A DNA stretch of 64,000 bases from Haliotis rubra (GCF_003918875.1 NW_025766966.1:1116001-1180000); one strand, 5' to 3'. Counted from the stretch's first letter, positions 27,947-57,977 are shown. The notes: generated by a model from the letters alone, not told the origin. Made by a program: numbers and translations.

Positions 27947-30900
27947 TCATCTCCGAGTATGCCCGATACGCACTGTAGGCTCCGTTGTATATTCGTACAG
28001 CGCCTCGAACAGGAAAGCATACTGTTCCTGGAATCAAACACCGACACGCTTCACAATATTGTACATAAATACAGGGTGTGAGTGAGTTTAGTTTTACGCC
28101 ACACACAGCAATATTCCAGCTATATGGCGGCGGTCTAAATAATCGAGTCTGGACCAGACAATCCAGTGATCAACAGCATGAGCGTCGATCTTCGCAATAG
28201 GGAACCGATGACATGTGGCAACCAAGTCAGCGAGCCTGACCACCCGATCCCGTTAGTCGCCTCTTACGACAAGCATTGGTTACTGAAGATCAATATTCTA
28301 ACCCGGATCTTCACGGGTAACATAAATACAGGAGAACACATTGAAAACTAATGTAGGGTTCAGGACATGGTTTTTGGAGCCAAAAGAAACTTAATGTCTG
28401 CAAGTATTGGGCAATCAGCTACTGCTGACAACTTTCTTTTGGTAACGTGGGATACGGGATCTACTTAAAGGGTACGAACTAGGCTGTACGCATGAGGCCA
28501 ATATAATCGTATTTGGCACGCTAATTTATCAATAATATATATAAAGAAAATAATAACGGGTTATGGTTTTCATCTTAATAATTTCTTTCCCCGATATTTT
28601 GTCAGTAAGTTAACTTCAAATGATACCCCTTTCCCAAAGCTTCGTGTTGTTGGTATTGGGGAATCAGGGCTGAGCAAAGAGAGCGAAGAATATGATATAA
28701 TATGGATTCAGGAGGAGAGACACTTGACACCCTCGTCACAAAATCCAGTTCTGTCAGTTCTGCTTCTGTACCAACCTCTGTCTGGACCATCTCCATCCGC
28801 TGCTGTCTGAGCTGTGCCACACACCCGAAGACATCCACAATACCGTCAGCTTTAGCCTGAGACAGAAGGTAGTGCAGAGCGATGAATGTTCCAGTTCGGC
28901 CGATCCCAGCACTGTAAATGAATGGTAATGTGTTAGTACATCTTTGTTTTGAATCACCAAACTCAACGAACTTGATTCAGATAGCACAATGAAAGTAGGA
29001 TTACCTGCAGTGGACGATGACTGGTCCATGTACAGCTGACGCATCCCGGAACACCGCTGACCGGAAGTCGAGGAATGCCGACACATCACGTGGAGAATCA
29101 CAGTCAGGCCAGGCGGTGTAGTGGTAATGGAATATTTCCCTGGACATTTCTCCCGACTGGCACAAAAGAACGTGTTACTGTAAATGTAACGCAGGCAAGC
29201 GCGACGTTCATACGTGCGTCCCTTAAAAGTACATTTTTGTCTCTGATGCATTAATTTGGAAATGTTCTCCACATGTCTACCATAAAACGTCTTTAAAAAG
29301 TTTACTGAGGCCTTGAATGTTGTCACCTTGATCGAACAAATTCTGTGCAAGAGTGGTATGACGTTCTTTGTAATCTTGGTAAAAACAGCATACTCGATTG
29401 TACCTCAAAGTTTGTGAAATGTAAACTACAAAAGGCTGGAGCTGTTGGGATATTGATCAACATGAAAGGAAAGTTGAAATCATCCCCTTTATTATACATC
29501 CTTGTGGAGGATTTTTTTNNNNNNNNNNNNNNNNNNNNNNNNNNNNNNNNNNNNNNNNNNNNNNNNNNNNNNNNNNNNNNNNNNNNNNNNNNNNNNNNNN
29601 NNNNNNNNNNNNNNNNNNNNNNNNNNNNNNNNNNNNNNNNNNNNNNNNNNNNNNNNNNNNNNNNNNNNNNNNNNNNNNNNNNNNNNNNNNNNNNNNNNNN
29701 NNNNNNNNNNNNNNNNNNNNNNNNNNNNNNNNNNNNNNNNNNNNNNNNNNNNNNNNNNNNNNNNNNNNNNNNNNNNNNNNNNNNNNNNNNNNNNNNNNNN
29801 NNNNNNNNNNNNNNNNNNNNTCACACAATGTGCTCATGCGGAGAACCGTACCAAGGCTCTCAACGTGGTGAGCGAAAGCTTCAACTGCCTCACAGTGAGT
29901 GTATAAATAAATGTATGCGCTTGCGTTCGTGCGCGTGTGAATAATTCACATATATGATGTGTGATTTGTTTGAGGTCATGTGCATAATCAGTTAAATTAT
30001 CCGGTTACAGAGAAAATAAAACTCACTGACTTTCATATACTTACATCTTAACTGCATCCCTCTTTCATCAGTGGATTTTAACTAAAAGGTTTATTTTACA
30101 CACCTTGATGTTGAACGTCCTCTTTACATAGGAGTCGCTGACTTCTTCCAGCACAAACTCCACCGTGATGTCATCGAATACCTTTACTTCATCGATCTCG
30201 CCTGGCCAGTACTTGGCACACTTCATCTGAAACAACACAGTTTATGTTAGTATCTCAGTACTCTGTATAACGTGTCATTGTGTTAACCTCGTTATTACAC
30301 TGACATGGGTACCACACTCATGACAATAATCTTTTCAACGTTACGAATTTGTTTTACAATACATCAGCTCATGTGTTAAACAGTACCTTTAAACAGTATG
30401 GAATCTTTTGCAAAATCTAGTTTAGAACAGTTGACTGAAGTAAGTAGTTTACACTAGTGAGTCTAAACTATTGATGGGTAGTATATATCAAATGAATCAA
30501 TGGGCGTTTGTAACACAACCTTTCCGTCTTCGATGATGTTTGTAAGCATGACAATCTGTCGAGATTCAGTCTCCCAGACCATCCTCCAGAAGTCAGGAAC
30601 AACACGTAGAAATGGTCCTGAAAACATGAAGTCAATGTGATCAGTGTCATCTCATCCATGGTCAGGTCAGGACTCGGGTCATGAAAAGTGTGTGATTTAA
30701 GAATAGACAACACTTGAAGTGGTAGAAAAACAAACATGACAGTTTGGGTAAAATATTAGAATCTCATGCACAGTTTCCACGTTTGTACCAGCTACCTCTG
30801 CTGTGGAATGCTCGTATTATTAATCCCTTTCACAGAACTGTTGTAGCTCACCTTGAGCGGCTATGAACTTTTGCAGGCAGCCAACACCCTGGTGAGAAAT

Positions 30901-33900
30901 AAAATGCCATTAAAACTGCATTTATAATTGTACTCCTCTAAAGGAAAGAACATGTTTTTACTGTAAAGAGTTTATTGAAGATGAATGTCATGTTTTATTA
31001 CACTGTCCGCTTTATTCTTTGAAAGAGATGCCCTTTTTAGTTAATGAGAACAGCTTACTGTTAGTTTTATGTCATTTAGTGACATTGATAAGATTAGATT
31101 TTTACTGTCCAATCCACAAGTGTCTTTTGATACAGCCAAAACCTGCTTTCTTATCTTACGGCGGCGACATGCCCTTTTATACTCTTAACTTGGTTATGTT
31201 GGTAAATAATGTTAAATGTATCTTATATTCTTTTAGTTTTGTATTTTTATATGTTATATAGTCTCTCATAAGTCTGTAAAGATTGGTTCAACGTTGTATT
31301 ATTTTGTTCTATGTACATAGGTGTGAAGTTGAGGTGAGACTCAAATAAATTATATGTCTGTATGTCTGTCTATATTTGAACACAGTGAAACCAGTTATTT
31401 CGTCCTTCCAAGTGCAAACTTCCGTTTTACAAAGGTCAGGTATTACGTATAAGAGACGCGTAGTAATGTGATGATCGTCCACTGGGCGGGGATACCGTAT
31501 TAACGGGGTTTTCTGCACATTTATATACACGGTACTAGTACGTACCCTACTGGACAAAAGAAAGTGTATACTCCTGTATGATTGAGTCTTAAATGTAACA
31601 GAAAACGAAATGAGTATTCGTTATTGAGTGAATATAACGTCGCGCTGTGTTACAGTGTCGGCAGCATCCAAAGTGTTTATATTCTTTTCCCAGCAGTTTA
31701 TATTGGTTATACTCACTTACTGGACACAGTCAAATACACTCTGATGCAAAGGGTTATCGTTGTCAATGTGTATAGGGTATATACGGTGTATTGTGACTCA
31801 TATAAAGGTGAGGAAATACGTATAGTAGTTTTTAAACATTTACTGCTAAATTATTTGAATTCCCTTGTTTCTGATGTAATTATAAACTGTACAATATTTT
31901 GTTTGTTAAAGAATGATTACATATAACGTGGAATTACCTAAATGGCTAGGAGGGGTTCACCGCCATTGTGTTCAGTGTTTGTCGTGTGTCTAGTTAATCT
32001 TAGAGTGGAAACTTCAAACCATGAATATGATGCATGGAATTTAAACAGTCAGTGGAGACTGCTGTCTTGGAGACACTGCTTGAAACAAACTGTTACGGTG
32101 TTTGGAACACGACCTGCGCCCCGTGTGGTAAATAGCGCCATAAACAAGCTACATACCTGTATGTAATTAGCATTGATGTATCCGCTGAAGACGTTCTCGG
32201 CGACCGCTTTTAACACAACTCGACTGTTGTCATCTGAAATTGTAAGGTTTATTAACATAACATATGGGTAATATATTTCTCAGTGAGATTTACAGAAAAA
32301 GACTCCCGCATGTCAATGCCATTATATACTGGTGAAAATAGCCACATGTGCTTGTTGTCCGAGGCAGTTTAATTGATCGGACTCTAATGCACAGTAACAG
32401 ATGTTGTTGTACGTTGGCGATATGGCTCGTTGTTCATTTTAAGTAGCTTCCATTATTTACAGCAAACCGTCTGGAATAATGCTGACAAACAAGTTTTAAG
32501 ATGGTTTACCATCATAGAGTAAATCTTTGTTCACAAACCCGCTTTCTTTGACGAACACAAGAATGGTTTCGAGTACATGACGTTTTGACAATCATTTCAG
32601 TTTTCGCAGTTTTCACTGCTTAACGGGGCGGAATGTCCAAAGGCTCGAGCTCGCAACTCTTGGACGCTAACTGGGAAAACTTGTACTCATGATAAGGATG
32701 AATCTGGGATTCGAAAAGCTGAAAACAGGCAAGCCTAACGCTTAACTTTGTACATCAACCGGGCCACTCGCAAAATATATACATTGTAGTTTCATTTGGC
32801 GACAAGCAAATTATCTCCCCTGAATTGTTATCTCTGTCCACGCTGATTATATACAGATTATCTCCCTTGAGTTAGTTATCATGGTGTCTCTCATGAAGGC
32901 TCGCGATGAATTCACCAGGAACATATCAGTCACACTTCTGCCTTGTCCGGGTGTAATTGTGCATGGCCTACGGTACTCAGAGGCTACTTACAAGGAAGAA
33001 CATCCCGGTATCTGTTCTTGCAAATGTTATTTCCCTTCTGCGCTTCACAACACAGCGTGTAGTCGGCTCTGGGTAGGTCCTGAAAACACGTGGAAAATCA
33101 AACATTAAAGGCATTAATATATTTTAGACACAATTTGTTTATTTAGATTCAAAAAAGAATTTTGAAAGGAACCAATTGTTTTTTAACTATCACTTGCGCG
33201 ATGTCTTAAACATCCGAGCCACAAGTCCTTGGTTATGCCCCTAATGCCGAACTCCAGGCAGGGTAACAAGTACTTATATTTCAATGTCCTTTGGTATGAC
33301 TAGGCCGGGTCGGGGCATCGAGCACCCGACCTTCACCTCTCACGGTGTGGGTTGTGGAAGGGCGGTCTTCCTTGACCTACCAGGTCATGAGATGTATCGG
33401 ATGTTATTTGAGGTCAGTCATGGTCAAAGTATATTTAAGACTACTGAAGTCAATTTAAGAAAAATGATTATGTTTATGTCAAATGAAAAAAACAAACATG
33501 CATCAAACTTGCCAATCACATTTCAGTAGTAGATACGTTTGACCTGTGTATTTACCATGACACTTACTTCAAACTGCTTGAATAAACACTTGGTACTTAG
33601 GAAGAGCTGTAGACATCGCTTCATGTCTATCTCGTGGGGCTCTGTCGAAGGACGTCTATGGAGATGGCCACGTTGCAGGCTGAGGGAGTCGTACACTGTG
33701 TTGTCGACAGCAGCATTCCCGACTGACTGGAGCTCTAAAATAAACAGTTGGCTTTTGTAGTGTAAAGATGGTTGGTTGGTTGTTCGAGTCTGGACTAGAC
33801 AATCCAGTTATCAACAGCATGAACATCGATCTACGCAATTGGGATGCAATGAGTTGTGTCAGCCAAATCGTGACCACCCGATCCCGTTAGTCGCCTCTTG

Positions 33901-36679
33901 CGACAATCATGGCTTGCTGAAGACCAGTTCCAACCCGGATCTTCACGTATTTTAGTGTAAAGTCTGTCTTGCACTATCTTTGTGTCACTAACACGTACCT
34001 ATCGTGTTTCACAGATGTAGTTAGTTTAAATTTGATATCTTTCAATGGACAACAATCTTTCCTACTCAGAGTGTGGTTCAATACATAGTCTATCGTGTTT
34101 CACAGATGTAGTTAGTTTAAATTTGATATCTTTCAATGGACAACAATCTTTCCTACTCAGAGTGTGGTTCAATACATAGTCAAATTAACTCTGGTTAATA
34201 TCAATTATTCTGAATTACAACGATGCACGTGTATACACCAATTGATCGGCGGTCTGTCTATCGCAAGGTACTTATGAAACTTTCACCAATAATTATTATA
34301 TAATCAAATACCATACCGTTTACCGCTTCTAAACAAAAACTTTGGCTGCTTTCATTCCCTCTGGACAGGCAGCTCATCGAACCGTCACGAGAAGTAGTTG
34401 CCAACCTGGAACTGAACAAGGAAACGTACTGAGTACGTATGAGTACGTAGTGCTACGCAAATCTGACAATTGGCGCGTACGGATGAGTACGGGTAGTGGG
34501 TGAGTGAGTCCAAGCAGTCTTAACACGGTGTACTCATTGAACACCTGGTGTCATCAATGATTTTCAGTGATCCCTTCATAATATAATAATGTATATGGAT
34601 ATAATATATGGCTAGAACTAAGTGAGACATCCAGTTGGACTCACCGACGAGAGTTGGCCCTGACACGGCGACTGTTTCTGACGAGGCGATACCTGTGACT
34701 GAAAAACAGACAAAACATTGACCTAGGGGTGTCCTTATAACAGATGAATGAGTGAGCGACTATGATTGTACGCCGCTTTAAGCAACATTCCGGCAATCTC
34801 ACGGCGGGGGACACCTGAAATGGGCTTCACACTATGCACCCATATGGGGAATCGAACCCGGACGAGTAGACGCGCGGGTACACCGCCCCTCCAACAGATT
34901 ACTTTGGTCGGAACATTAACATATGTCTAGAATAAAGCCTGCATATAACACGAGTACGTATACACATATATCAACCAGGTGATTCAAACACACTATATGT
35001 GTTGTGATCTAGATGTGTGAGTGAGTGAGTGAGTTTAGTTTCACGCCGCACTGAACAATATTCCAGCCATATGGCGGTGGTGTCTAAATAATCGAGTCTC
35101 GACCAGACAATTCAGTGATCAACGAGCATGATCATCGATCTTCTCAATTGGGAACCGATGACATGTGTCAACCAAGTCAGTGAGCCTGACCACCCGATCC
35201 CATTAGTCACCTCTTACGACAAGCATGGGTTACTGAAGATCAATTCTAATCCGGATCACGGGTGTGAACTGGATGAATCGATAAATCATTGACTAACCCA
35301 TTTATAAAGAAAGGGGTTCCTAATCAACTTTTACTTTTTAACGTTTATATTTTTTTAAACTTCTGTCTGATAAGTTTTACTTCCGCAGAGATGGGCAGCA
35401 CACTGTGAAACTCCTTTTAACGTATTACGTACATGTTCAGTATACAGGCTGACGTAATGTAGGACTTACCGGCGTACACGGTAGATGCACGTGATGAGTT
35501 CTATCACAAATATAACCGCAAGCAAGCCACTTGATATAGATGTGACTATTCTGTGCACCTCTTCTGTTGAAAATAGTTGAATCAATATATTCACTAGAAG
35601 CAGATTTAAACCGCTGCATAAGCCAGCAAATTATAGGTTAAAATTAATTTATATTAAATTATATAACATTCACGTTTATCTATTAATTTATAAAGTACTC
35701 GCCGATAAATTGCTTTCAGAACAAATGAAACGTGAAAAGTGAACGTGAGTCAGTCTAGTTTTACGCCGCTTTTAGCAAAAGTCCAGCAATATCACCGGGG
35801 GGTGGGTGCTGGGTTTGCACCAGTAATGGGCTTCACACATTGCACCATGTGTGAATGTAGGGAATCGAACTCGGCACCGGCGTGACGAGCAAACACCTTA
35901 TCCACTAGGCTACCCAACCGCCCCAAAGGTGTAAAATCATCCTCGCTTCCATTACCCCTGCCAGCTGCCGGGATAAGTAGAAGTTTAACAATATAGGTGA
36001 GGTGAGGTGAGGTGAGGTGAGGTTGAGGTGAAATTGGGTTTAACGTCGTGCTTGAGAATATTTCGCTCATATGACGACGTGCATGCGTGTGTATGTGTAT
36101 GTGCGGCTGCTTGTACTAGCCCAGACTGAAGCTGGTTTTATAGTGCTAGCCCACTGAGATACCATGCCGCAGTGAAGCATGAATACCCCACTCAGACACA
36201 TTATACTGACTCCGAGGCGACCAGTCCTTGTTGTACCCATTAATGCCGAGCGCCAGGCAGGGACCAACAAGTACCATATTTTAACGTCTTTTGGTATGAC
36301 GCGGTCGGGGATCGAACTCGCGACCTTCCGCTCTCCGGGAGGACGCTCTAACCACTTCACCACGGAGGCGGTCTTAAGAATATAGGAGGGACGAATATAG
36401 GTCATATACAGTTCGTTATACTGGCACAACCTTCATTGCTTGTGAAATGTAAGTTCTCTGTAATCTCCATTGCCTCTGGTAGTGTTTCATCGTAATTCCC
36501 CACACTTTAATTACCTGTTTCATAAGTAAGAAGCAGGTGCAAGATGATGTAAAAAATTAACATTATCCAGGATACGTGTTTTGCATTCCGCTTACACTAA
36601 TAATGTTGAGGACACGTCATCACGAAACTGAAATTTGGTGATACGATGTTCACTTACCTGAGATTGTGCAGTTATTCAT
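27947..36679 (-). CDS. Transmembrane protein tyrosine phosphatase with one catalytic domain and minimal ectodomain (~407 aa, 13 coding exons)
   Basis: Exons: 36679-36658, 35563-35470 (TM), 34698-34645, 34411-34317, 33734-33568, 33079-32992 (KNRYRDVLP), 32233-32157 (YINANY), 30888-30852 (FIAAQG), 30617-30520 (DFWRMVWE, IVMLT), 30226-30104 (KCAKYWP), 29156-29005 (WPD, VHCS), 28911-28776 (AGIGRTG, MVQT), 28027-27947 (EQY, stop). Phases consistent; exon sizes 88/77/37/98/123/152/136 resemble the receptor-PTP D1 pattern. The start codon is inferred. Confidence 0.85.
29245..29518 (-). mobile_element. Second copy of the Penelope-like fragment (PTP intron)
   Basis: Reverse complement closely matches 5445-5690; runs into the gap. 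Confidence 0.65.
29519..29820. other. Assembly gap (PTP intron)
   Basis: N run. Confidence 1.
33999..34181. repeat. Perfect 91-bp tandem duplication
   Basis: Copies start at 33999 and 34090. Confidence 0.85.
35995..36372 (-). mobile_element. SINE family C copy in a PTP intron
   Basis: Matches 14205-14558; (GAGGT)n on the + strand at 35995-36030. Confidence 0.8.
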
Positions 36680-38761
36680 CCTAAAGGAATAAGTAAATGG
36701 TAAAGTGTTTTTTGTAGATTCACAATGTCTTCAACTGTGGGTTATTATGGCATCTGAAGAACCATGGTGAGCCCAAATACAATATGGCAAATGGTTCTCC
36801 CCCTTTAACGACAAATACAAATTCCCATGTATGACAATGAGACGTTAATATTTCTGAGTGTGAGGCTTTTAAGGAACGTTTGATGAATGAAATAGGCTGT
36901 TTATCTTATGAAACATTCTCATGCAATCATTAGAAATGCGAACTTACCCTGTCTTTCGCTGCTTATTCAGTGGAAGAACAGTTTTGTGGGGCACGTCCTT
37001 GTTTCACATCGATACCGATACTCCGTACGTCAGTACAACCTTCTATTTCCTGTCACACTTGTCACTGACACTATTGACTTGTAATTGAAGTAGATCTAGT
37101 TCATTGGACTTTCATGATGGTTGGTTGTTGTTTAACTCCGCATTCAGCAATATTCCAGCTATATGACGGCGGTCTGTAAATAATCGAGTCTGGACCAGAC
37201 AATCCAGCGATCAATACCATGAACATCGTTTTACGCAACCGGGATACGATGACATGTGTCAACCAAGTGAGCGAACCTGACCTCCCGATCCTGTTAGTCG
37301 CCTCATACGACAATCATGGGTTACTGAAGACCAATTCTAACCCGGATCTTTCACGAGTCTGCCCGAAACGAAGCACACGTGACACATGCTATCTCCCTTT
37401 AGGCAAGCGAGTTTGTTCAAAATTCTCAGGTCACCAAGCAAAAACGGGTACCCAGTGGGATTGGTACATATGACCATTAACCTTCTAGCGCCTTACAGGC
37501 AGCATGGGTTAACCGGGGTAATGATGTCCATTACGTTGTATGCGCTTCGAGCATGCCTGTGGGGCGTGGAGTTTAGCGTTATACAAGTGGCCTTATTATT
37601 TTATTATTGATATTCACAAATCCATTGGCATAGTAGTGATAACTGCGAATCAATGTTTCGAGTATATAATTAATTATGTCGGTAGTCGGTTTATGTTTCC
37701 AAGCATTGCGCGAGCGTGTTTGTATATGTTTCAGTGTTTGCAGTAGTGTGTGTGCGAGTATGCATGTGTGTGTGTTTTTCTGGACATAGAAAGTTTGCTT
37801 GTTTCGTCTTTCATAGAAAGAATGTGTTTTAACAGTAATCGCGGAAAATGATCTTATCCCTAACACATCCGGGATAATTAAAGCCCCGCCCCTTAACCGG
37901 TAATATTTCATAGTACGTAATGCCCTTACACGTGGAAAGCCGTTCATGTAGTCAGCAACATCCTCATTCAATCTCCATTAAAGTACACACTGGTCCACAA
38001 CTCCAGTGGTGTTGGCAGTGAGATTAAAATATGATCGGAATGTAAAGGTTGTCTTTCACGGGAAGCGAAACCGAAATTACATGCAGAATATTTCCTCCAT
38101 ATCGTTGTCAGTCGAATTTGTTGCGCTGTGTATTGTGAGTATATAGGTGACACATCCTTGTACAGAAATTACTTGCGCTAACAAACCAACTCAAATAAGG
38201 TTATGAAATATTTCCGTTGCTTCATATAGTCAAAATGTCGAAGATAATTCGCCGGTAGTTTCTAATCTCAGGTGATCGATGTTCAGGAAATGTTTGGATT
38301 TTGAAATTACGTTAACACTGGTATGATGTTTCCGGCCCTGAGATATCGAATGTTGACATGACATTCAGCGAACAAGTGGATATGAGTATCTCAGCTGAAT
38401 GTGTGAGTAAGTGCATTAATGATACTTAACACCATTTCCAAGACTGGTGTGAGTGAGTGAGATGGGTTTAACGGTTTTGGTGATCTATCAGCATATAAAA
38501 AAAATGCGATTTTTTCACGAAACCCAGGTCTACTGTTTCCATTGTGAACAATAATTATAACTGATGAGAGGTTTATTATACTATCACGAACAAATGAAAC
38601 AAAGAGGGGTGTAGTAACACAGCCATTTACTCACAGAGGAACCGTACAACACTTAACACGATTCTCATACAATATGAAGGAATACAATAGAAGCGACAAA
38701 ACCCTTTCCACATCCATAAGAAATCTCTGCTGAAAGCAGAGTCGATTGTACAATAATGCCC

Positions 38762-39727
38762 TTCCTTTCTGTTAACACGTAAAGTGTCAACATTCCAGCC
38801 TGTCTTCCACCTTTCTGTTAACACTTAAAGTGTCAACATTCCAGCCTGACTTCCACCTTTCTGTTAACACGTAAAGTGTCAACATTCCAGCCTGTCTTCC
38901 ACCTTTCTGTTAACACTTAAAGTGTCAACATTCCAGCATGTCTTCCACCTTTCTGTTAACACTTAAAGTGTCAACATTCCAGCATGTCTTCCACCTTTCT
39001 GTTAACACTTAAAGTGTCAACATTCCAGCATGTCTTCCACCTTTCTGTTAACACTTAAAGTGTCAACATTCCAGCATGTCTTCCACCTTTCTGTTAACAC
39101 TTAAAGTGTCAACATTCCAGCCTGTCTTCCACCTTTCTGTTAACACTTAAAGTTCAACATTCCAGCCTGTCTTCCACCTTTCTGTTAAACGTAAAGTGTC
39201 AACATTCCAGCCTGTCTTCCACCTTTCTGTTAACACTTAAAGTGTCAACATTCCAGCCTGTCTTCCACCTTTCTGTTAACACTTAAAGTGTCAACATTCC
39301 AGCATGTCTTCCACCTTTCTGTTAACACTTAAAGTGTCAACATTCCAGCCTGACTTCCACCTTTCTGTTAACACGTAAAGTGTCAACATTCCAGCATGTC
39401 TTCCACCTTTCTGTTAACACTTAAAGTGTCAACATTCCAGCCTGTCTTCCACCTTTCTGTTAACACTTAAAGTGTCAACATTCCAGCCTGTCTTCCACCT
39501 TTCTGTTAACACTTAAAGTGTCAACATTCCAGCCTGTCTTCCACCTTTCTGTTAACACTTAAAGTGTCAACATTCCAGCCTGTCTTCCACCTTTCTGTTA
39601 ACACTTAAAGTGTCAACATTCCAGCCTGTCTTCCACCTTTCTGTTAACACTTAAAGTGTCAACATTCCAGCCTGTCTTCCACCTTTCTGTTAACACCTAA
39701 AGTGTCAACATTCCAGCATGTCTTCCA
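38762..39727. repeat. 46-bp minisatellite, about 21 copies
   Basis: Unit ccagcctgtcttccacctttctgttaacacttaaagtgtcaacatt, with an internal hairpin tgttaacac/gtgtcaaca. Confidence 0.95.
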
Positions 39728-39851
39728 AACACGTATGGGACTTCCTGTCAGCCATGTGGTCAATGTGCTGGAGGTGTCCACTGTGACAAGAGATCTGGAC
39801 TTCGTCCAAATGGATGTCAGGATGGTTGGTCGGGGTCTTTGTATAGGACAC
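39717..39851 (+). pseudogene. Orphan MEGF-type EGF exon with two lost cysteines
   Basis: ttccag|...|gtgagt, 135 nt, phase 1-1: CLPNTYGTSCQPCGQCAGGVHCDKRSGLRPNGCQDGWSGSLYRT; expected Cys codons appear as CGT and TAT. Confidence 0.6.
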
Positions 39852-40691
39852 GTGAGTAAAATACACACTTACTGTAATTTCTTGTCATATGTTAATAGAA
39901 GTGACAAAACCCTTTCCACATCCACAAGATATGTCTGCTAAATGCGGAGTCGAGTGTACAATTCTGACTATATCATGAGCATATATTTGTTTAAGCAGTA
40001 TTACAGCTGTACGATGTTGTTTGTAAACAAATCGAGTCTGGACCAGACAACCCAGTGATTGTCACCACGCGATACGATGACAAAAACCTGCCAGGAGTAC
40101 GTAATTTTGTTATACATTTTGTAATTGTGTGTGTGTAAAAATGTATATACTTTTTAGAACGAATACAATCCCTGATCTGTCAGCATGGACACAATACTGA
40201 CACGTGAACGCCAATGTACCCTATTACTGCTAAGTGAGTGAGTTTAGTTTTACGTCGCTTTTGCAATATTCCAGCAATATCACGGTGGGGGACACCAGAA
40301 AAGGCTCCACACATTGTACCGATGTCGGGACTCGAACACTTTAACCACTAGGCTACCCTACCCCTAAACACCCCCACCCACCCACACACACACACCACAA
40401 CCCCCTATTACTTCTAAGTTTTGTTTGTTTAGAATAGCAACATAACCCCTACGGCATGTTGACATACATTATCACATTTACCATTTCAGTTAAAATTTAC
40501 ATCAATAACAAATCATCACAATCCAGACTACATGTGACTTTGATTAACCTGAATGCCCAGTTGCAATAGGATCAGTGCTAGTTAAATACAACACGCTTTT
40601 ACAACATAATCTGATATTTGTACTTAAATATTGAGTAACATTTTGTACATTCAGCCAATGCTTAGATTTACACCAGCCTTCGCAACTGCCA

Positions 40692-41246
40692 TCAAGGGGT
40701 CGTTTTATTGACTCTCCTCATTGTGTTTTGTAGGACTCTGTTGATGTCTGTGCTATTCCTTGCTGATATCTCGTAGTGGCCATGTTCCCATTCACAACTG
40801 ATGAACAGGTCCCTGTAGACACGCCGAGTCTTGTCCACGTTTTGAGCTATATCAGTCTTGTTGGCCACAAATATTATGGGGATGCTGTCTCCCTTCTGTT
40901 GAATGATCTGGTCCCTGACTGCCGTCACAGATTTGAAGGAATCTTCACAGACCATGGAATATACCAGAAGGTACGCATCACAAGACGGCAATCGTTGGAT
41001 GAAGGGGAAAGGTCGTTTAACTGCAGTTTCTATGACTTCAATATTGACATCCCTACCTCTGATTCCTAAATCATCAGTACGTTCGCCCTTCCTGCTACTC
41101 CTGCTTCTAAGTTCCGACCAATTCCTCTGTATGCCATCCACAAGCGTCTTCTTCCCAGCTCCTTGATAACCCATTACGACCATCTTCAGGGAGCTTTTGC
41201 CTTGGCATCCTGGCTCCTGGAGGAATCTTTCTGTTTCAGGATCCAT
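40692..41246 (-). CDS. Ras-superfamily small GTPase, RASD/Rhes/DIRAS-like, degenerate G1/G3 (probable pseudoGTPase), single coding exon
   Basis: 184-aa ORF: KMVVMGYQGAGKK (G1), ETAVKRPFP (G3 region), DAYLLVYS...EDSF, IPIIFVANKTD (G4), YEISAR (G5); no CAAX. Confidence 0.85.
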   Translation of the reverse strand: MDPETERFLQEPGCQGKSSLKMVVMGYQGAGKKTLVDGIQRNWSELRSRSSRKGERTDDLGIRGRDVNIEVIETAVKRPFPFIQRLPSCDAYLLVYSMVCEDSFKSVTAVRDQIIQQKGDSIPIIFVANKTDIAQNVDKTRRVYRDLFISCEWEHGHYEISARNSTDINRVLQNTMRRVNKTTP

Positions 41247-48520: not shown

Positions 48521-51500
48521 TAATAATAATAATCTTTATTTGCACTGAGAAGGCCACAGGCCTGTAGTACATAAAGTTATGTTACATTTGAGAGGAATTT
48601 AGATCGGGTAATCATAGCATAGTAAATGAACATTGAAATATTTTGTAGAAGAACTGGATTTTTACTACTTAACAATGAGGAGAATTTTATCACATTTGGA
48701 TGGACATAGTAATATCTTTTAATATATTTTGTTCGCAACCGGTCATAAAATGGACATATTAGGAGAAAATGTAATTCATCTTCTATTTCGTTTAAATTAC
48801 AAAGTGTACATATTCTATTTTCTCTTTTTACATTCATATATCTGCCTCTTTCAATCAACAAATCATGAGAAGAGCATCTGAATCGTGCCAGTGCTATTCT
48901 AAACTTTTTAACATTAACACAGGATAGATATGACTCAAGAACTATGGCATTTTTAAACAATGGATAATACATGCATTTATTTGATAAGGATATCCTTTCA
49001 CTCCATGTTTGAATATACATATCTTTTAATCTTGTCGTTAAGGATTGTATGAATAACGTAGGTGATTCGACATATTGTGTATTCCATGTAATTCCAAAAC
49101 CAATAGAATATAAAAGTTTTTACATTAGTTGCCCAGTTCTTTTGTCCACCTTTATCATATAACAACATCATATTATAACACTTCTTGGGTAAGCGATTTG
49201 AAGGCATAATCAGCAGTTTTAGCCAGTACTTAATAACTTTAATGCTTGTAAGAATGTGCATTGGGTACCTACCGCATTCACCATAAATCACTGCGTTAAT
49301 AGTGTTAATTTTAACTCCGAGGAACTTTTTGCATGCGTATAAATGGATTTTTTCAATTTCGTCAAATTTTGTTATTCCCCAAATTTCGGCCCCATATGAT
49401 AAAATTGGACTGACTTTGGCATCAAATATTTTAAAGAATGAAGAGTAGTTAATATTACCAAGTATACTCAACTGTTTCATAATTCCAATTAATGCTTTTG
49501 TCCCTGTAACGCTGCATATTTTACATGCCTCGTCCATGACAGGCCACTGGTGAAATATAGTCCCAAATATTTATAAAAGCCAATACACTCCAGCTGCATA
49601 CCTTTATATAACCAGTTTTCCTTTTTGACAATTTGCCTCCATTTTTGAATACAACAATTTTCGTTTTTTCTCTATTTACAGTTAATTTCCATTTATCGCA
49701 GTAATTTTCAAGTTCATTAATTTGATTCTGTAAGCAATTAATCGTGCTTGAGAACAAAACAATGTCATCTGCAAATAGCAATAGGAAAATATGAACTATG
49801 TCAGGGTGGAGTTGAATCCCGTGTACACAATTAGTTTCAATTTGTCGTGCTAACTCATTTATAAAAAAGGAAAATAGAAATGGGCTTAGTATACAGCCTT
49901 GTCTCACACCAAGTTGCAAGTCGAATGTTTCTGAATAATTATGATTACTTTTAATGCAAGACTTGACATTTTCATATATATTGCATAAAAGTTTACTCAT
50001 TTTGCCACTGAGACCGTGGGTATTAAATAGAAGCCAAAGTTTTTTTCGTTGTATTGAATCGAAAGCTTTTGAAAAATCTACAAATAGTGCGTAGAATTTC
50101 CCCCCTTTAGAGTTTAAATACCTTTGAATAATACTTTGCAGTATAAACATATTATCTACTGTCGTATATCCCTGTCTGAAGCCAGCTTGCGCTTCGCTGA
50201 TCTTATCCATTGAGTCTCCCCAGTTTACAAGTCTTTTATTTATAATAAAGGTGAAAGTTTTACTAAATATGCTCAGTAGTGTTATGCCTCTGTAATTATT
50301 TGGATTATTTATATTACCTTGTTTATGGATAGGAACTATTATGCCAATTGCCCAACATCTGGGGAACGTGCCAGTTTCTAATATCAAATTAAAAAGCAAT
50401 TCTAAGTACGGGACGATAAGATCTGCTGAGTATTTAAAAATTCAGATATCGTTTTATCAATTCCTGGTGATTTATTACATTTCAATTGGTTAATGCTAGC
50501 TAAGATTTCATCTCTAGTAATTGGGAATCAAGTATTACCGTGGTAAGCTCTGAATTCGGATCTGATGGGTTTTCATTCTCGAAATTATCACATGTTACAT
50601 CGTCATTTTCATTATGTAAAGAGTTAAACAGTGTCCGAAAGTGTTTTAGCCAGTCGTTCATTTCGATGTTGTTTTGAGCTTCATGTCTAGTATTCAGGTG
50701 TTTGAGTTCATACCAAAATTGTTTTGAATCAGATATACTGTTTTCTATTACTCTCTGCTTCTCTTTAAAATAATTAAGGCGTTTTTCCTTACAAATTGAG
50801 TTATATTTATTTCTTTTAGCGCAATATTGATCGTATGATTCTTTATCTTTCGATTTCCTAAACTTATTCAGAGCTCTACATCGGTCTGATTTTAATCTTT
50901 CACATTCAGAGTCGAACCATTTATTAGTAGTTGTTGTGGGAGGGCTAACTGTTTTCTTCATGCAAGAGGCGGCCAGACAGAGTGCCTCGGTCATATAGCT
51001 TATACTATCATCAATATTAACGAAAGCACAGTCAATCGATTTATCTAGTAATTTTTGTACGTTATCTGACAAAATATTTTCTCTAAACTGTTCTGATTTA
51101 TCGTTATCCCAAATGAACTTAAACGACTTATTCCTACAATTGGTAGAACTGTTGTACTGTTTTTAGTTTTAATGTAGTGGGAAGATGATCAGATTCAGTT
51201 CTCGTTTGTATGCTAAAATCTAGAATATAGTCAAATATTGTTGATGAAGAAATGATATAGTCAATAACACTGGTGCCAGTTGGACCAAGAAAAGTAAAGT
51301 CTCCAACTTCTGTGTCACTTCCACATCGGCCATTTAGTATATGAATGTTAAAAACAGAGCACATGTCAAGAAATGTTCTACCAAAGTTGTTAACGACCTT
51401 GTCGGCGGAGAAACGCTTCAAGTTAAAATAATCTATAAGAAAATCCCAGTAGGAATGATTTCTATTTTCTGTATATTCAAATAAGTCATCTTCAACAAAA

Positions 51501-52634
51501 TCTGCTTTCGTTCCGGTTCGAGCATTAAAATCTCCGCCACACAAGATATAACAATCTGGTAGAGATGAGATAATTTCTAATATAGAGTCCTGGAATATGC
51601 TAATACCATTTTTACAGTTAGGGGAAAATTTATCATACCATGACGATGACTCCGGTTGTAGATAGACACAGGAATATAGAATATCTTTATCAAAACCAAA
51701 CAGCGAACGGTCGAAAAGAACGAAAACAGCATTTTCTGTTACTTTAAACCACTTCAAGTATTTAAGTAAATGATTCTTTATTAAAACCACAATACCACCG
51801 GAAGATCGACCACCGCTTGGTATATTTTGTGCATGTTTCATAACATTCTTATAATCAGAAAAAATATCATTTAAATCTAGATTCTTTGACCATGTCTCAG
51901 TTAATCCAATTATGTCAAATGACTTAATATATTCAATAAAATCAGAGTCTGTTAGTTTCTGCGTAATACCAGAAATATTCCAAAATAATAAATTCATTGG
52001 GTTATAAGAGTCTTTAGTAGTATTTTTAACATCATCATCTTCATTATTTGCTTCACTTCGATGCGCCATAAAATGCCTATATACATGTTGGCCCTGGCCA
52101 CACCCCTACTTGTCACTGTCGACACGTCTGGATGTCGACCTCAGGGGGTATTTACCCCCCTGTGTCCTGGCTACCCCAGGATCTGGGTGTACGGTCAGTA
52201 TTTGTCGGTGAGGGACGGTGTGAGGCCGACGTACCCGCAGATCTACTAGTGTCTTCCCGGGGGAGTATGCAGCAACTTACTACCCTTGTAGTAGTATCGA
52301 GTTTCGGGGTTCTCACTGCGGAGTCGATACAGTTCTTGACGTTGATGGGAAGTAAGGTCATTGGCAATCCCCACTCCTTGTTCTTTCAAGACACTTCTCA
52401 TCTTAACCGAGTGCCACTTGTCTTCCCAATGACACATGCGGGCTATTATAGGTCTTGACTTGTCGTTCCGTTTGGTGGATATCCTATGGGTTCGTTCTAT
52501 GTCGCGAGGGATAAGGGGTGGGAGATCTCTCATTACTCGTGCTTTGTTAAGTACGTCTAGCCCTTTCTGTTTACTTTCAGTGTATGTCTCCTTGTCCCCA
52601 CTCTCAGGTACACCATACAACACCAAATTGTTGC
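48521..52634 (-). mobile_element. Non-LTR retrotransposon (APE-RT LINE, RTE-X-like), 5'-truncated and frameshifted
   Basis: ORF1 remnant (NNLVLYGVPES, IERTHRI, RPIIAR, IANDLT; 52246-52634); endonuclease (GLTETW, GDFNARTG, IDY, SDHLP; 51134-52069); RT (QAGFR, DFSKAFD, GVRQG, FADD; 49521-50399); C-terminal CCHC (RICTLC...EDELHFLLICP); AATAAA plus (ATT)n tail at 48521-48540. Clade assignment is from recalled motifs. Confidence 0.92.
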
Positions 52635-53217: not shown

Positions 53218-56200
53218 ATGGGTGCATGTCCGTACTTCAACAGTTTTGATACGTACGTTGTAGTGGGATATTGTTTACAATCAGGTAATCAGGTAATTTG
53301 TACATTCCCAATTCCAGATTGGCGTGATCGTATACTGCTGGATTGTGATCATTGCAAGGCACAGAGTAGGGTCGGGTACGTCGAATTAAATTGTATCTGA
53401 GCCGCTTCACGTTGGTAGTATAAGGCATATAGCCAATATAATTTACACTGATATAGAATATGCTAATTGAATTGTAGGTCACATATATATGAAACCGTAC
53501 TTTCAAAATTTAACGCATGTGTATTGGCCTAACATTCGTTATTGTAAATAAAACGATTCACAAAGGGTAACAGATGACAACCGGTGCTATAGCTGAGAAT
53601 GCTTAGTCACTGTACATGTATTGGCATAAAACAGCATACATTTAAACATTGCATTATCTAGAATCTTGTGTGGACAAAGAAGGGGACGCCTGCAAGACGA
53701 TTGATTGTTTACAGCCAGGAGTCGTTCACCTGTGTGCGAAGACGTGTGACATTTGTACGGAAAAAGGTTTGTTTTCACTGACTAAAACGTGACACGTAAT
53801 ACCAGTTCAGGCAGATCATTCCATAACGTGTTCCTCGTTTCTTAATTCTGCGGTTGACTGAGCCTCACCTGTACAATTTAGCAACACATTTATGAATCAC
53901 ATATCGTCCTCAAAGTACTTGAATGAGACGTTGATTTTCTTTTGATTTCCATGTGTGTGTTTGCAATTGTTTGACTAGGTTTTTTTCCATATACGTGATA
54001 TTCCTCTGTATCAACTGACAAGAACATGATTAGTCTGCATAATCTATCAAGATGTTAATGTCAGAAACAGATGCTTCGAACGGGTTCCTCATTGTCCGAC
54101 ATGATTGTGCAGGTTGCAAAGGGGGCGACTACAAAACAGTTGAGGGAAGGTGTGAATCCTGTGACGAGCCGCCGCCATTGACATCACAGGACACTGACTC
54201 CTACAACAGTTCATGTGGCTGTCCAGACGGCAAGTGGGGTCGTGACTGTAATGAAACTTGCGGCATTGGATGCACATCTACATGTCGCAGGTGGACTGGG
54301 GCCTGCCATTCTGGATGTAAACACTGTTACTGGGGAAGTCGTTGTACTCGGATATATGACAATTGTATCTGTGCTAAATCCCGTGTTTGCAAGTGTAAAA
54401 AGGGATATCTCGGAAGAACATGTGACGTGCCTTGTCCAGAGACATGTCTTAATGCTGAATGTAACAACACACGTGTATGTACAAGGGGATGTACAGAAGG
54501 CTGGCATGGGCTACAGTGTGGTTCTCCATGTGGACGAAACTGTGAAAACGCAACGTGCAGACGGAATACTGGATCTTGTGACAAGGGATGTACTTCTGGC
54601 TGGTATGGTGACAAGTGTGACATGAGATGTTCAGGAAACTGTGAAAGTGGAATGTGCATACGGGATACTGGATCTTGTGACAAGGGATGTACTTCTGGAT
54701 GGTATGGTGACAGATGTGACATGAGATGTTCAGGAAACTGTAAAAGTGGAACGTGCATACGGGATACTGGATCTTGTGACAAGGGAACTTCATGGAACAA
54801 GTGTGACATGAGATGTCCAGGACACTGTGCTTCAGTGTCGTGTAACAGAACTGATGAGGCATGTTCTCCCTGTAAGAATGGTTTCTCAGGTTTTAACTGT
54901 AGCACACCATGTCCACCCAATTGTGCAACAAACTCGTGTGCACAAAGTAGTGGTTCCTGTAACAAATGTACCACCCGCTACAGCGGATCTCACTGTAACA
55001 CATCATGCCCAGGCAACTGTGCTACTGAGTCCTGTGAACAACATGGAGCTCTCTGTACAGGATGCAAACCTGGCTACAGCGGTCCACGCTGTGACACCAG
55101 GTGTCTAGACACGTGTCTGAATGGTACATGTGACATAACTGATGGATCTTGCCTACTCGGGTGTAAAGTTGGTACCTATGGACATCACTGTCACCGCTCC
55201 TGTAATGTCAACTGTCTGAAGACCAACTGTTCCCGTGACTCTGGAAACTGTACACACGGATGTAAGGACGGCTGGTGGGGGTCTCAGTGTGATAGCAGGT
55301 GTCCAACACATTGTGCCAGGTGTGATAGGGTTGATGCTGGATGTCTGGGATGTGAGGAGAACTACTACGGAGACAACTGTAGCAGCAGGTGTTCCCCCAG
55401 GTGCGGCAGGTGTGACAGTACTGGATATTGTCTTACCTGTGCGGAAGGCTGGGAGGGAGACGGCTGCCATGGTAACCATACTTTTCAACTAACCTGACCG
55501 AAAGTATACTGACTTAATGTTATTGTTCACACACTTCCCTCAGTGATCACATCTCGGTTTGATCCAGGGGAGCGAATCTATAGCCATGTGAAACTTCTAC
55601 TTGTTCATTTCCGTGGGTAGCAGTAAGGATCAAAGTGTAGTTTATTTATTTCGACATTTTATAAAGTTAGATTTTGTTGTGACCATTCTGCATCAACCAC
55701 GCCTAAAGCTGATACATTGAATAGTCGTTAAGAAGCATTTGTCCTCAAAACATACAGTATATCTGCGATTTTTACACACGTGTGCGCACACACACATACA
55801 AATACAAATGAAATTTGATACACGTGTAGTTGTACAATGTCATATATTTCCTTCTATACATATGCTTTGTTATTTCGGATAAGTTCTATTATTCACCATG
55901 CTCTTATATTTCCTGTTAACCATTTTCCCTGTGGTAATGGTAGAATGGGACAATACGTATGTCCTAATGATGACTTCCTAGTAGTTTTTAATATAGTTTA
56001 ATTTGTGTGTTGGTAACATGTTTGAATATCAGTGGTGTCAGATAGGTTTTTCTGTAGCTGTATTTATTCCTTGTTTGCAAACATTGAAATATATCCAGAT
56101 GAGCCACCATGAGGTAACACTATTTTCAGGAACTCCTATTGATCCTGAACAACTGTTTGTGTATCTTTCAATACCCATGTCCTAGGGTGGGGTGTGAAAG

Positions 56201-57977
56201 TATCTACTAGATGTATGTAAGACCTTTGTTTTACAGGATAAACAAACTCATAAAAACAGTAGTAGTCTGAAATGTTTATCCAGGGAGTATAACGGTGCAA
56301 TTATGTTATTAGTAGCAAGAAGGTCAAATATATGATGAAATTAACATGAACGTACATGTATTCGAAATCAAATACACAAAATCCTATCACAAGTCTATTT
56401 AATAATTGCTACTGGTGTGAACTGGTGTACTATATGTCAGTTGTGTATTTTGCAAATAGACAAATTTACTGAACCATGTATATGAATTGATCAGATTGTG
56501 CACTTTTAACAGGATATCGAGCCTGGAAAAGACGGTTATAGATATTTTCATTATTGTTATTATAATTGCGTGCAATACCTAAAGCAAACAGCTGTTAAAA
56601 ATTCGTACCTGTCGGATACGTAGTTATCCTATACTCCAGCTAATATTATACAACTTACGAGTGGTCATCATTTAAAGAAAATGTATTTTAACAATAGTTC
56701 CACAATAGAAGGCCCGAATTTTCTGAAAAAGAATCAAATTATACGTGTGCGTTTATTCATCTGATAAATACCAGTCGTGTTTTTATATATACACTAAACG
56801 ATTATTGATGTTGTAGTGCAACATTACAATATGGTTGATGGTCATAAACCAAGAATGCTCTTGATCTTTTCATTATGTTTCAGAGTCGAAGAGTGTGAGT
56901 CCATCAATAATTGTACTGATTTGCGTCGTTGTAGCTCTGTTGCTTATCATCGTGATCATGACCATTAAGAGGTACGTTCGGGTTCTTTATAACAACTGTA
57001 GGCTTAGTAACTGAGGTAAATTCTGTTAAGTTGACCGTATAATTATCTGTTCTATTCGTATAAATACCCTTGACCTTTTTGTGTCGTCACAATCCAATTC
57101 TCTTATATTTAAGTTTACATAGATATCGTATTGCTCTTAATGTAATTGGACAGCTATTACTAGAAACAAAATGTATCATAACTAATGTTTCTATTAGACA
57201 CATAATTGTTTGGATAAGTAAGGATGGCCTTAGGTATTAAAACTGAAAGCTATGGTAACAATTAAGTTCTCCAATGATTAGATTAAAATTTGACAAACAT
57301 TCCTCATAGAGACTGTGTTTGCCTTAGTTCATTACCTTAATGATTACTTTGTAGCAACAGGTCTACCACTTTTGATGTCAGATATTTAATATTCTTACAT
57401 CTCAAAACTACTTCCTGCCGAGCGAATAATGCAATTTCTCAATTGTCAGTCATTGTCAGAACTGGTCTGAAAAATATTTTTAAGTCCCATAGTTCATTAT
57501 CTCGTTCAGTACATTTAATGACTCACTGGGTAACTGAATATAACCACTTTCGGTTTCGGGACAATAGTTTGATATGTGAGACACAATTATCACAAAGCAG
57601 ATATCTTATCTGAATATGACCTAAATAGTGATTGCATAGCACCCGTCTCTTATATAATTCATGTGCGCAATTTTGGCAAACTGTTTAAGGTTGGAGTTTT
57701 TCATTAATAGTTTTCATTCAATATTATTTTCAGTTTGTCTAAACGAGGAAGCACTGTGTATCTCACCCCCCAAATTGATGAAGAGGCTGTCTCTCCAGCA
57801 AATGATTTGCCACTGTTTCCACTGTATGAATTGGATGAAGCACGTGACAGTACAGGATCCCAGTATGAAAGAATCCCTGACACTGCAGTATCGGTGGAAG
57901 ACCGAGGCTACGAACAGTTGAGACAAGCTCCCCAATGCACGGGTTACACTTCTTTGAAAAGAGCAGAGGAGGTCTGA
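53218..57977 (+). CDS. ShKT + multiple EGF-like (MEGF/SCARF-type) single-pass receptor with ITIM/ITAM-like cytoplasmic tail (~620 aa)
   Basis: Exons: 53218-53284 (leader; start uncertain), 53662-53766 (ShKT: CVDKEGDACKTIDCLQPGVVHLCAKTCDIC), 54113-55471 (EGF repeats, e.g. CDKGCTSGWYGDKC), 56884-56971 (TM IIVLICVVVALLLIIVIMTI), 57734-57977 (tail, stop TGA). GT-AG, phases 1-1-1-2. Confidence 0.8.

Follow-up and report, generated by a model that had tools for sequence, protein, structure and literature searches.

How far can a receptor-type protein tyrosine phosphatase (RPTP) be reduced and still act at a membrane? This question is raised by a gene on the minus strand of a 64,000-nucleotide (nt) stretch of the Haliotis rubra genome (GCF_003918875.1 NW_025766966.1:1116001-1180000), hereafter the window, whose first letter is position 1. 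A previous reading made from the sequence alone had described here an RPTP with a tiny ectodomain, a Glu inside its membrane helix and one intact phosphatase domain, and had compared it to the immune adaptors DAP12, FcR-gamma and CD3-zeta. According to the data reported below, the locus harbors a stand-alone gene, so far found only in abalones, whose product is, with good confidence, a membrane-tethered classical protein tyrosine phosphatase (PTP), predicted to be catalytically competent and devoid of a functional ectodomain.

Structure and expression of the phosphatase gene

The open frames and splice sites of the minus strand assemble into a gene of 13 exons, all bordered by GT-AG, which spans 36679 to 27947 and codes for a protein of 407 amino acids (aa) (Table 1). 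The product is identical to the H. rubra RefSeq protein XP_046574244.1/XP_046574245.1 (P0151, 407 aa), annotated as "receptor-type tyrosine-protein phosphatase mu-like", for which RefSeq has two transcripts, both with the same protein. Threading P0151 onto the window reproduced every exon, the sole change with respect to the splice-site model being the acceptor of exon 4, placed 6 nt earlier. This exon has tandem acceptors (cag/ttccag/) at 34411 and 34405; the latter was rejected, since both the RNA contigs and the RefSeq threading use the upstream one, which adds Ser-Arg to the protein. The possibility of an exon hidden in the run of N at 29519-29820 (intron 10) was also rejected, because in three orthologues exon 10 is followed directly by exon 11, and the protein reads on without a gap. 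No further 3' exons were found in the window; the orthologues possess one additional short last exon.

The RNA evidence consists of the assembled contigs of four runs from the same species, placed on 34250-40249, three of which (X1-X3) were informative. Single contigs of 1005, 815 and 1468 nt (X1, X2 and X3, respectively) contain exons 4, 3 and 2 spliced, and their joints are exact (CT..AC on the plus strand, that is, GT..AG on the minus one); hence, spliced RNA is present in these runs. These contigs also pass unspliced through the region of the ATG at 36679 (pieces 36675-36828, 36675-36871 and 36677-36847 in X1-X3), extending about 190 nt upstream. Translation of this RNA-supported 5' untranslated region (5'UTR) revealed an in-frame stop 18 codons 5' of the ATG and no earlier in-frame ATG. 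This, in turn, implies that no upstream signal peptide or ectodomain is encoded by these transcripts. Moreover, the length of the 1468-nt X3 contig, of which only the 5' 430 nt fall inside the examined interval, approximates the sum of 168 nt of 5'UTR, the whole coding sequence and about 79 nt, thus leaving no room for a second phosphatase domain.

Two short upstream open reading frames are embedded in the 5'UTR (within 36735-36830, minus strand), neither of them in frame with the main ATG. In exon 1, the contigs of X1-X3 show 11 letters versus the 14 of the reference at 36661-36674, in the part bounded by 36675 and the final three bases of the exon; judging from the coordinates of the pieces, these missing 3 nt probably represent an allele that stays in frame and lacks one Asn.

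The H. rubra protein is composed of a 12-aa stub, one hydrophobic helix carrying Glu29, a polybasic stretch, a linker of about 100 aa and a single classical PTP domain. AlphaFold2 (AF2), fed with a 32-sequence alignment, returned a single long helix over residues 5-57, with a predicted local distance difference test (pLDDT) score of 86-92 for residues 11-40; its confidence is low over residues 57-121. The net charge amounts to -1 on the N-terminal side of the helix, versus +8 over the 15 residues that follow. Membrane orientation can be predicted from flanking charges through the positive-inside rule, which, applied to this charge distribution, predicts an N-out/C-in topology, i.e., a type III anchor. 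The single membrane helix N-terminal to the catalytic domain that characterizes receptor-type PTPs is, therefore, predicted by hydropathy, AF2 and charge; the signal peptide and the folded ectodomain (Ig, FN3, EGF and the like) of such receptors are missing, and only the stub (8-17 aa among the abalone species) is found in their place. As for the glycan sequon of this stub, the glycosylation enzyme needs a distance of 12-14 residues from the helix; the H. rubra NCT lies only 9 residues away and, thus, is probably not used.

The phosphatase domain occupies 33079-27947. The Pfam Y_phosphatase profile (PF00102) covers residues 162-392 with E = 1.6e-77 (profile positions 1-233 of 234), and all the columns that are invariant across 32 PTP domains are kept, including D303, C335, R341 and Q379. 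The protein harbors the whole set of motifs of the classical PTPs (class I Cys-based, phosphotyrosine-specific), namely, KNRY, the WPD loop, the HCxxGxxR(S/T)G P-loop and the QTxxQY Q-loop. In the AF2 model the pLDDT of the domain exceeds 90, and the Foldseek comparison with PTPRT, PTPmu, PTPepsilon and PTPalpha D1 gave a template modelling (TM) score of 0.93 and a root-mean-square deviation of about 1.5 Å. The intact motifs and the predicted fold argue for a catalytically competent classical PTP. No D2 domain was found anywhere in the window, the D1 and D2 sequences of tandem PTPs both mapping to one exon set. The bit scores against PDB entries were 220-227 for the R2B subtype (PTPRK 227), 195-211 for R3 (PTPRO 211) and 185-194 for R4 D1 (PTPRA D1 194), a spread too flat to assign a subtype, for which the fold matches gave no better guide, and the nearest PTP domains outside the abalone orthologue group are only 42-49% identical.

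Most of what the sequence-only reading had described is recovered by this analysis: its spliced N-terminus of 50 residues is reproduced exactly, with the two residues added by the exon 4 acceptor falling after it, and the start at ATG 36679, the lack of a signal peptide and of an ectodomain, and the intact PTP domain without D2 hold as well, as does, at the level of prediction, the type III orientation. The interval it had assigned to the gene, 33568-36679, embeds exons 1-5, but the phosphatase domain lies outside it.

Table 1. Coordinates of the exons, motifs and membrane-related features of the phosphatase gene in the window.
Feature	Position	Strand	Content or evidence
5'UTR	36680..36871	(-)	RNA contigs, contiguous with the genome
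Exon 1, coding	36658..36679	(-)	Residues 1-7 + 1 nt (MNNCTIS); start codon, NCT sequon, Cys4
NCT sequon	36673-36665	(-)	Exon 1
Exon 2	35470..35563	(-)	Remainder of the 12-aa stub, hydrophobic helix, Glu29, conserved Cys33; RNA joint 34698/35470
Hydrophobic helix, residues 13-35	35549-35481	(-)	Best 19-residue hydropathy window 2.32
Glu29 codon GAA	35501-35499	(-)	Inside the helix
Polybasic stretch	residues 36-57	(-)	Strongly basic
Exon 3	34645..34698	(-)	Part of the polybasic juxtamembrane stretch; RNA joints 34411/34645 and 34698/35470
Exon 4	34317..34411	(-)	Acceptor 34411; RNA contigs and RefSeq threading
Exon 5	33568..33734	(-)	Linker with TVYDSL and conserved helix leading into the PTP domain
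TVYDSL	33699-33682	(-)	Exon 5 linker
Exon 6	32992..33079	(-)	Start of the PTP domain, KNRY motif
KNRY	33019-33008	(-)	Exon 6
Exon 7	32157..32233	(-)	DNSRVVL and YINANY motifs
Exon 8	30852..30888	(-)	FIAAQG motif
Exon 9	30520..30617	(-)	DFWRMVWE and IVMLTN motifs
Exon 10	30104..30226	(-)	KCAKYWP motif; Pfam match E = 9e-05 for the exon alone
Exon 11	29005..29156	(-)	WPD loop and start of the catalytic HC motif; Pfam E = 2.9e-09
WPD	29111-29103	(-)	Exon 11
HCSAGIGRTG	29012-28890	(-)	Intron-split, exons 11/12
Exon 12	28776..28911	(-)	SAGIGRTG P-loop and start of the Q-loop; Pfam E = 2.2e-13
QTEEQY	28784-28019	(-)	Intron-split, exons 12/13
Exon 13	27947..28027	(-)	End of the PTP domain and stop codon

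Conservation in abalones and genomic surroundings

Orthologues were searched for by probing the full library with exon 11 and by a word search, and the sequences of four Haliotis species were aligned by codon. One clear orthologue group was retrieved, embedding H. asinina P0001 and P0271, H. rufescens P0152 and P0274, H. cracherodii P0275, and H. rubra P0151; the word search, on targets of 0.55-1.75 times the query length, did not retrieve any relative of the N-terminal 150 residues outside Haliotis. In all three other Haliotis, a Ras-like gene and then the PTP gene are found on the same strand and in the same order, and the exon pattern is kept; a GH10 xylanase gene was seen downstream in H. 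asinina.

The synonymous divergence (dS) between the two clades is 0.45-0.52. The ratio of non-synonymous to synonymous divergence (dN/dS) is 0.14 in the PTP domain, 0.31-0.46 in the linker and about 0.7 in the 23 codons of the helix, the last value being noisy because of the few sites. The low ratio of the PTP domain implies that the gene is functional and constrained. Hardly any residue differs in the core of the helix, which runs from SGLL through CIY, and all four species have Glu29 (GAA); hence, the suggestion that this Glu might be a recent damaging substitution does not hold. The conservation that the sequence-only reading had asked about was found for the Glu and, as dN/dS, for the PTP domain, but not for the extracellular Cys, which is species-specific: the TGC codon of H. 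rubra Cys4 has as its counterpart a Ser codon (AGC) in H. asinina and, in H. rufescens and H. cracherodii, an AGC that belongs to the 5'UTR and is not translated, and an early Cys occurs in three species out of four, but at non-homologous codons.

Judging from the aligned sequences, the whole ectodomain stub is unconstrained. H. rubra and H. asinina start at AGG/ATG (window 36658-36680), and in the Pacific species the start is shifted in-frame, H. cracherodii and H. rufescens having GAT at the position of the H. rubra ATG and being translated from an in-frame ATG five codons downstream. In these two species the coding part of exon 1 is only 7 nt long, and in H. rufescens the AG before that site is also lost. 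The stub measures 12, 17, 8 and 8 residues in the four species, and the glycan sequon is present in two of them. In the linker, YDSL is changed to YDGH in H. cracherodii through an 18-nt deletion; no ITAM (immunoreceptor tyrosine-based activation motif) was found, the linker having a single YDSL.

Concerning the surroundings of the gene, a single-exon Ras-family open reading frame (40695-41246, minus strand; Pfam Ras E = 1e-16) ends about 4 kb upstream of it, and a Ras-family gene of 184-198 aa occupies the same relative place in the three other abalone genomes. Between the two genes there is a satellite (38764-39727) in which a 46-bp unit is repeated 21 times, the copies being 97% alike. Repeats resembling short interspersed nuclear elements are found in the introns and upstream of the gene (34650-35250, 36050-36450 and 37050-37450); their summed RNA-contig depth is in the thousands, versus 6-11 for the exons of the gene, and many false joints between repeat copies occur in the placement of the RNA contigs. 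Furthermore, a retrotransposon lacking long terminal repeats, with long open frames (48580-52105, minus strand) that were named by eye from their translations as endonuclease- and reverse-transcriptase-like, stands between the neighborhood of the phosphatase gene and an EGF-repeat receptor gene (54052-57977, plus strand). The membrane helix of this receptor (within 56895-57014) has no charged residue, and its EGF part shows about 30% identity with the ectodomain of P0049, which is 1363 aa long and carries two phosphatase domains. The receptor was considered as a membrane partner of the phosphatase and rejected, its helix being without a basic residue.

Known phosphatases, adaptors and the possible role of the helix glutamate

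An RPTP reduced to a membrane anchor is already known: vertebrate PTPROt (PTP-oc, PTP-phi), which is transcribed from an intronic promoter, has an 8-residue extracellular region followed by the helix and the single PTP domain of PTPRO (PMC8645932) and is an atypical RPTP without a significant extracellular domain (PMC8799702). The architecture of the abalone protein is, therefore, less unusual than had been assumed from the sequence alone. The two proteins share a tiny stub (8 aa versus 8-17) with no signal peptide, one membrane helix, one PTP domain and a length of about 400 aa, that of PTPROt being 405 aa. They differ in their origin, since PTPROt derives from an internal promoter of a full receptor gene with fibronectin repeats, whereas the abalone protein is encoded by a stand-alone gene with no larger isoform: the Ras-like gene lies 4 kb upstream in four species, and all the RefSeq isoforms are short. 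Moreover, no helix Glu has been described for PTPROt, and PTPROt belongs to the R3 subtype, to which the abalone domain cannot be assigned on the basis of bit scores. The abalone protein is, thus, set apart by its stand-alone gene without a long isoform and by the conserved helix Glu, the latter being the sole mildly unusual feature of the layout. We found no paper on the abalone protein, which is present in RefSeq as an automatic prediction.

Two further comparisons are informative. RPTP epsilon and RPTP alpha (R4) also have short ectodomains and were the top matches in a length-limited search (40-45% identity over the PTP domain), with a fold TM score of 0.93 for PTP-epsilon D1; however, a signal peptide and two phosphatase domains in tandem (D1-D2) are found in R4 enzymes, whereas the abalone protein is without D2. 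The oyster Crassostrea virginica XP_022313216 (P0013, 392 aa, "RPTP alpha-like") has an N-terminal stub of about 16 aa and a strongly hydrophobic helix, followed by a basic stretch and by its only PTP domain, with WPDC. Its PTP domain is 42% identical to the abalone one, but the N-terminal 150 residues are dissimilar and the helix has no acidic residue; the two proteins probably came to this layout independently.

By analogy with PTPROt, the abalone protein is most likely a constitutively membrane-tethered active phosphatase. Its N-terminal hydrophobic helix would work as a reverse signal-anchor (type III), with 8-17 poorly conserved residues outside and everything from the polybasic stretch through the mostly disordered linker to the one PTP domain on the cytoplasmic side. 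The protein, presumably placed at the plasma membrane, would then act like PTPROt/PTP-oc, that is, as a constitutively membrane-proximal phosphatase, and its targets would be set by the place and time of expression and by the cytoplasmic linker, rather than by ligand binding. As to the conserved Glu, it may mediate an association between helices, either with itself or with a partner.

In the first case, the Glu and the invariant Ser18, Thr32 and Cys33 would lie on one face of the helix, and self-association through this face would regulate the activity of the enzyme. Polar residues in membrane helices drive self-association, and on the helical wheel S18, L22, I25, E29, T32 and C33, all invariant, fall within 60 degrees of one another. 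Furthermore, the activity of PTPRJ is regulated by homodimerisation of its membrane helix (bioRxiv 10.1101/672147; PMC10461461). Yet the helix has no GxxxG-type motif, and its variable positions avoid the Glu face only weakly, with 6/8 on the far side (permutation p = 0.12, not significant). Regulation by self-association is, in our opinion, a tentative possibility, at least as plausible as the recruitment by a partner considered below, because helix contacts are already known to regulate PTPRJ.

In the second case, the protein would be a DAP12-like subunit, whose Glu would pair with a basic residue in the helix of a ligand-binding receptor, bringing the phosphatase to it; this is, in principle, unlikely. 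DAP12, FcR-gamma and CD3-zeta do resemble the abalone protein in that very little of them is extracellular and their membrane helix has an acidic residue, and the pairing of acidic with basic residues inside the membrane is an established way of assembly (bioRxiv 10.1101/2020.12.22.424036; PMC4141757). In abalones, the Glu is invariant in four species while adjacent helix positions vary, and a charged residue is costly in a moderately hydrophobic helix (2.32), so its retention hints at a use. However, according to an estimate from dS, a neutral Glu codon would remain unchanged about once in five on the shallow four-species tree; thus, its conservation is a hint, not a proof, and the helical-face pattern is the weak one reported above. 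A signal peptide is typical of DAP12-type adaptors, which also have a conserved disulfide Cys, ITAM tails (two YxxL/I 6-8 residues apart) and an Asp in the helix; the abalone protein has no signal peptide, no conserved ectodomain Cys, and neither an ITAM nor a YxxM tail but an enzyme, and the acidic residue is a Glu near the inner leaflet. Indeed, two thirds of the helix lie on the outer side of this residue, whereas in DAP12 and CD3-zeta the acidic residue is in the outer half or in the middle of the helix. In addition, the sole receptor gene in the window encodes no basic residue in its membrane helix. The analogy with these adaptors drawn by the sequence-only reading is, then, not borne out, the Cys, the sequon, the start codon and YDSL not being conserved and ITAMs being absent. 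Quite unlikely is also its extension to an "inhibitory adaptor", i.e., a phosphatase subunit that would be joined in the membrane to abalone ligand-binding receptors having a basic helix residue, as the catalytic mirror image of DAP12 in invertebrate immunity.

A different scenario concerns the state of the gene in H. rubra. Between 27985 and 27984, in exon 13, the reference is 1 nt short (ACAA-CGG versus ACAAACGG / ACAACTGG in H. asinina, H. rufescens and H. cracherodii); the deletion changes the frame of the C-terminal tail, with a stop 15 codons on, so that the tail conserved in the three congeners is replaced and the protein ends early. This could be taken as the mark of an incipient pseudogene, but a decaying copy appears very improbable. 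No conserved PTP motif lies beyond the deletion, and the Pfam profile is still matched from position 1 to 233 out of 234; the gene is expressed and correctly spliced, with no other defects; and the shifted frame (27983-27921) still encodes the conserved tail, matching H. rufescens at 21/21 residues, while the GTAAGT donor that follows is intact. That the tail is still encoded suggests that the base was either lost very recently or dropped from a run of A by the assembly.

Finally, the idea that the gene model is truncated, and that the true protein begins in upstream exons coding for a signal peptide and an ectodomain and spliced to the AG at 36681, deserves hardly any credence and is already largely ruled out: a good acceptor (pyrimidine tract and AG) does stand immediately before the ATG, and a CAG/GTAAGT donor is present at about 36949, but the contigs of three runs go straight through that AG, which is replaced by GG in H. 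rufescens, reading back from the ATG meets an in-frame stop in the genomic sequence and an in-frame TAA in the candidate upstream exon, in each of the four species another gene, the Ras-like one, already ends some 4 kb upstream on this strand, and the RefSeq models from four species all begin at the helix.

Some points weigh against a PTPROt-like tethered phosphatase, too. Topology, glycosylation, localisation and enzyme activity are predictions. The conservation comes from four congeners only, with a total dS of about 0.65, and the retention of a single residue is, therefore, weak evidence. The RNA support consists of assembled contigs of one study, the junction between exons 1 and 2 being inferred from piece coordinates, and an alternative isoform, in which the AG at 36681 is joined to an upstream exon, may exist; RefSeq has two transcripts with the same protein. 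Lastly, the tail is frameshifted in the H. rubra reference, and, if the shift is real, this copy differs from its orthologues. On the whole, what the sequence-only reading had observed is confirmed, and its interpretation is partly supported: the stop in the 5'UTR excludes an upstream signal peptide or ectodomain from the transcripts at hand, and both spliced RNA and orthologues are found, so that neither a lack of expression nor a lack of conservation speaks against the gene.

If the protein is indeed a constitutively tethered phosphatase of the PTPROt kind, it would represent a stand-alone invertebrate example of a layout known from a vertebrate isoform, and "anchor-only" receptor phosphatases would have arisen more than once. 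A wider interest for invertebrate immune signalling would follow only if the Glu recruits partner receptors. This is a small, tractable protein for asking what the membrane helix alone gives to RPTP function, and its conserved Glu offers a cheap and testable handle on this question.

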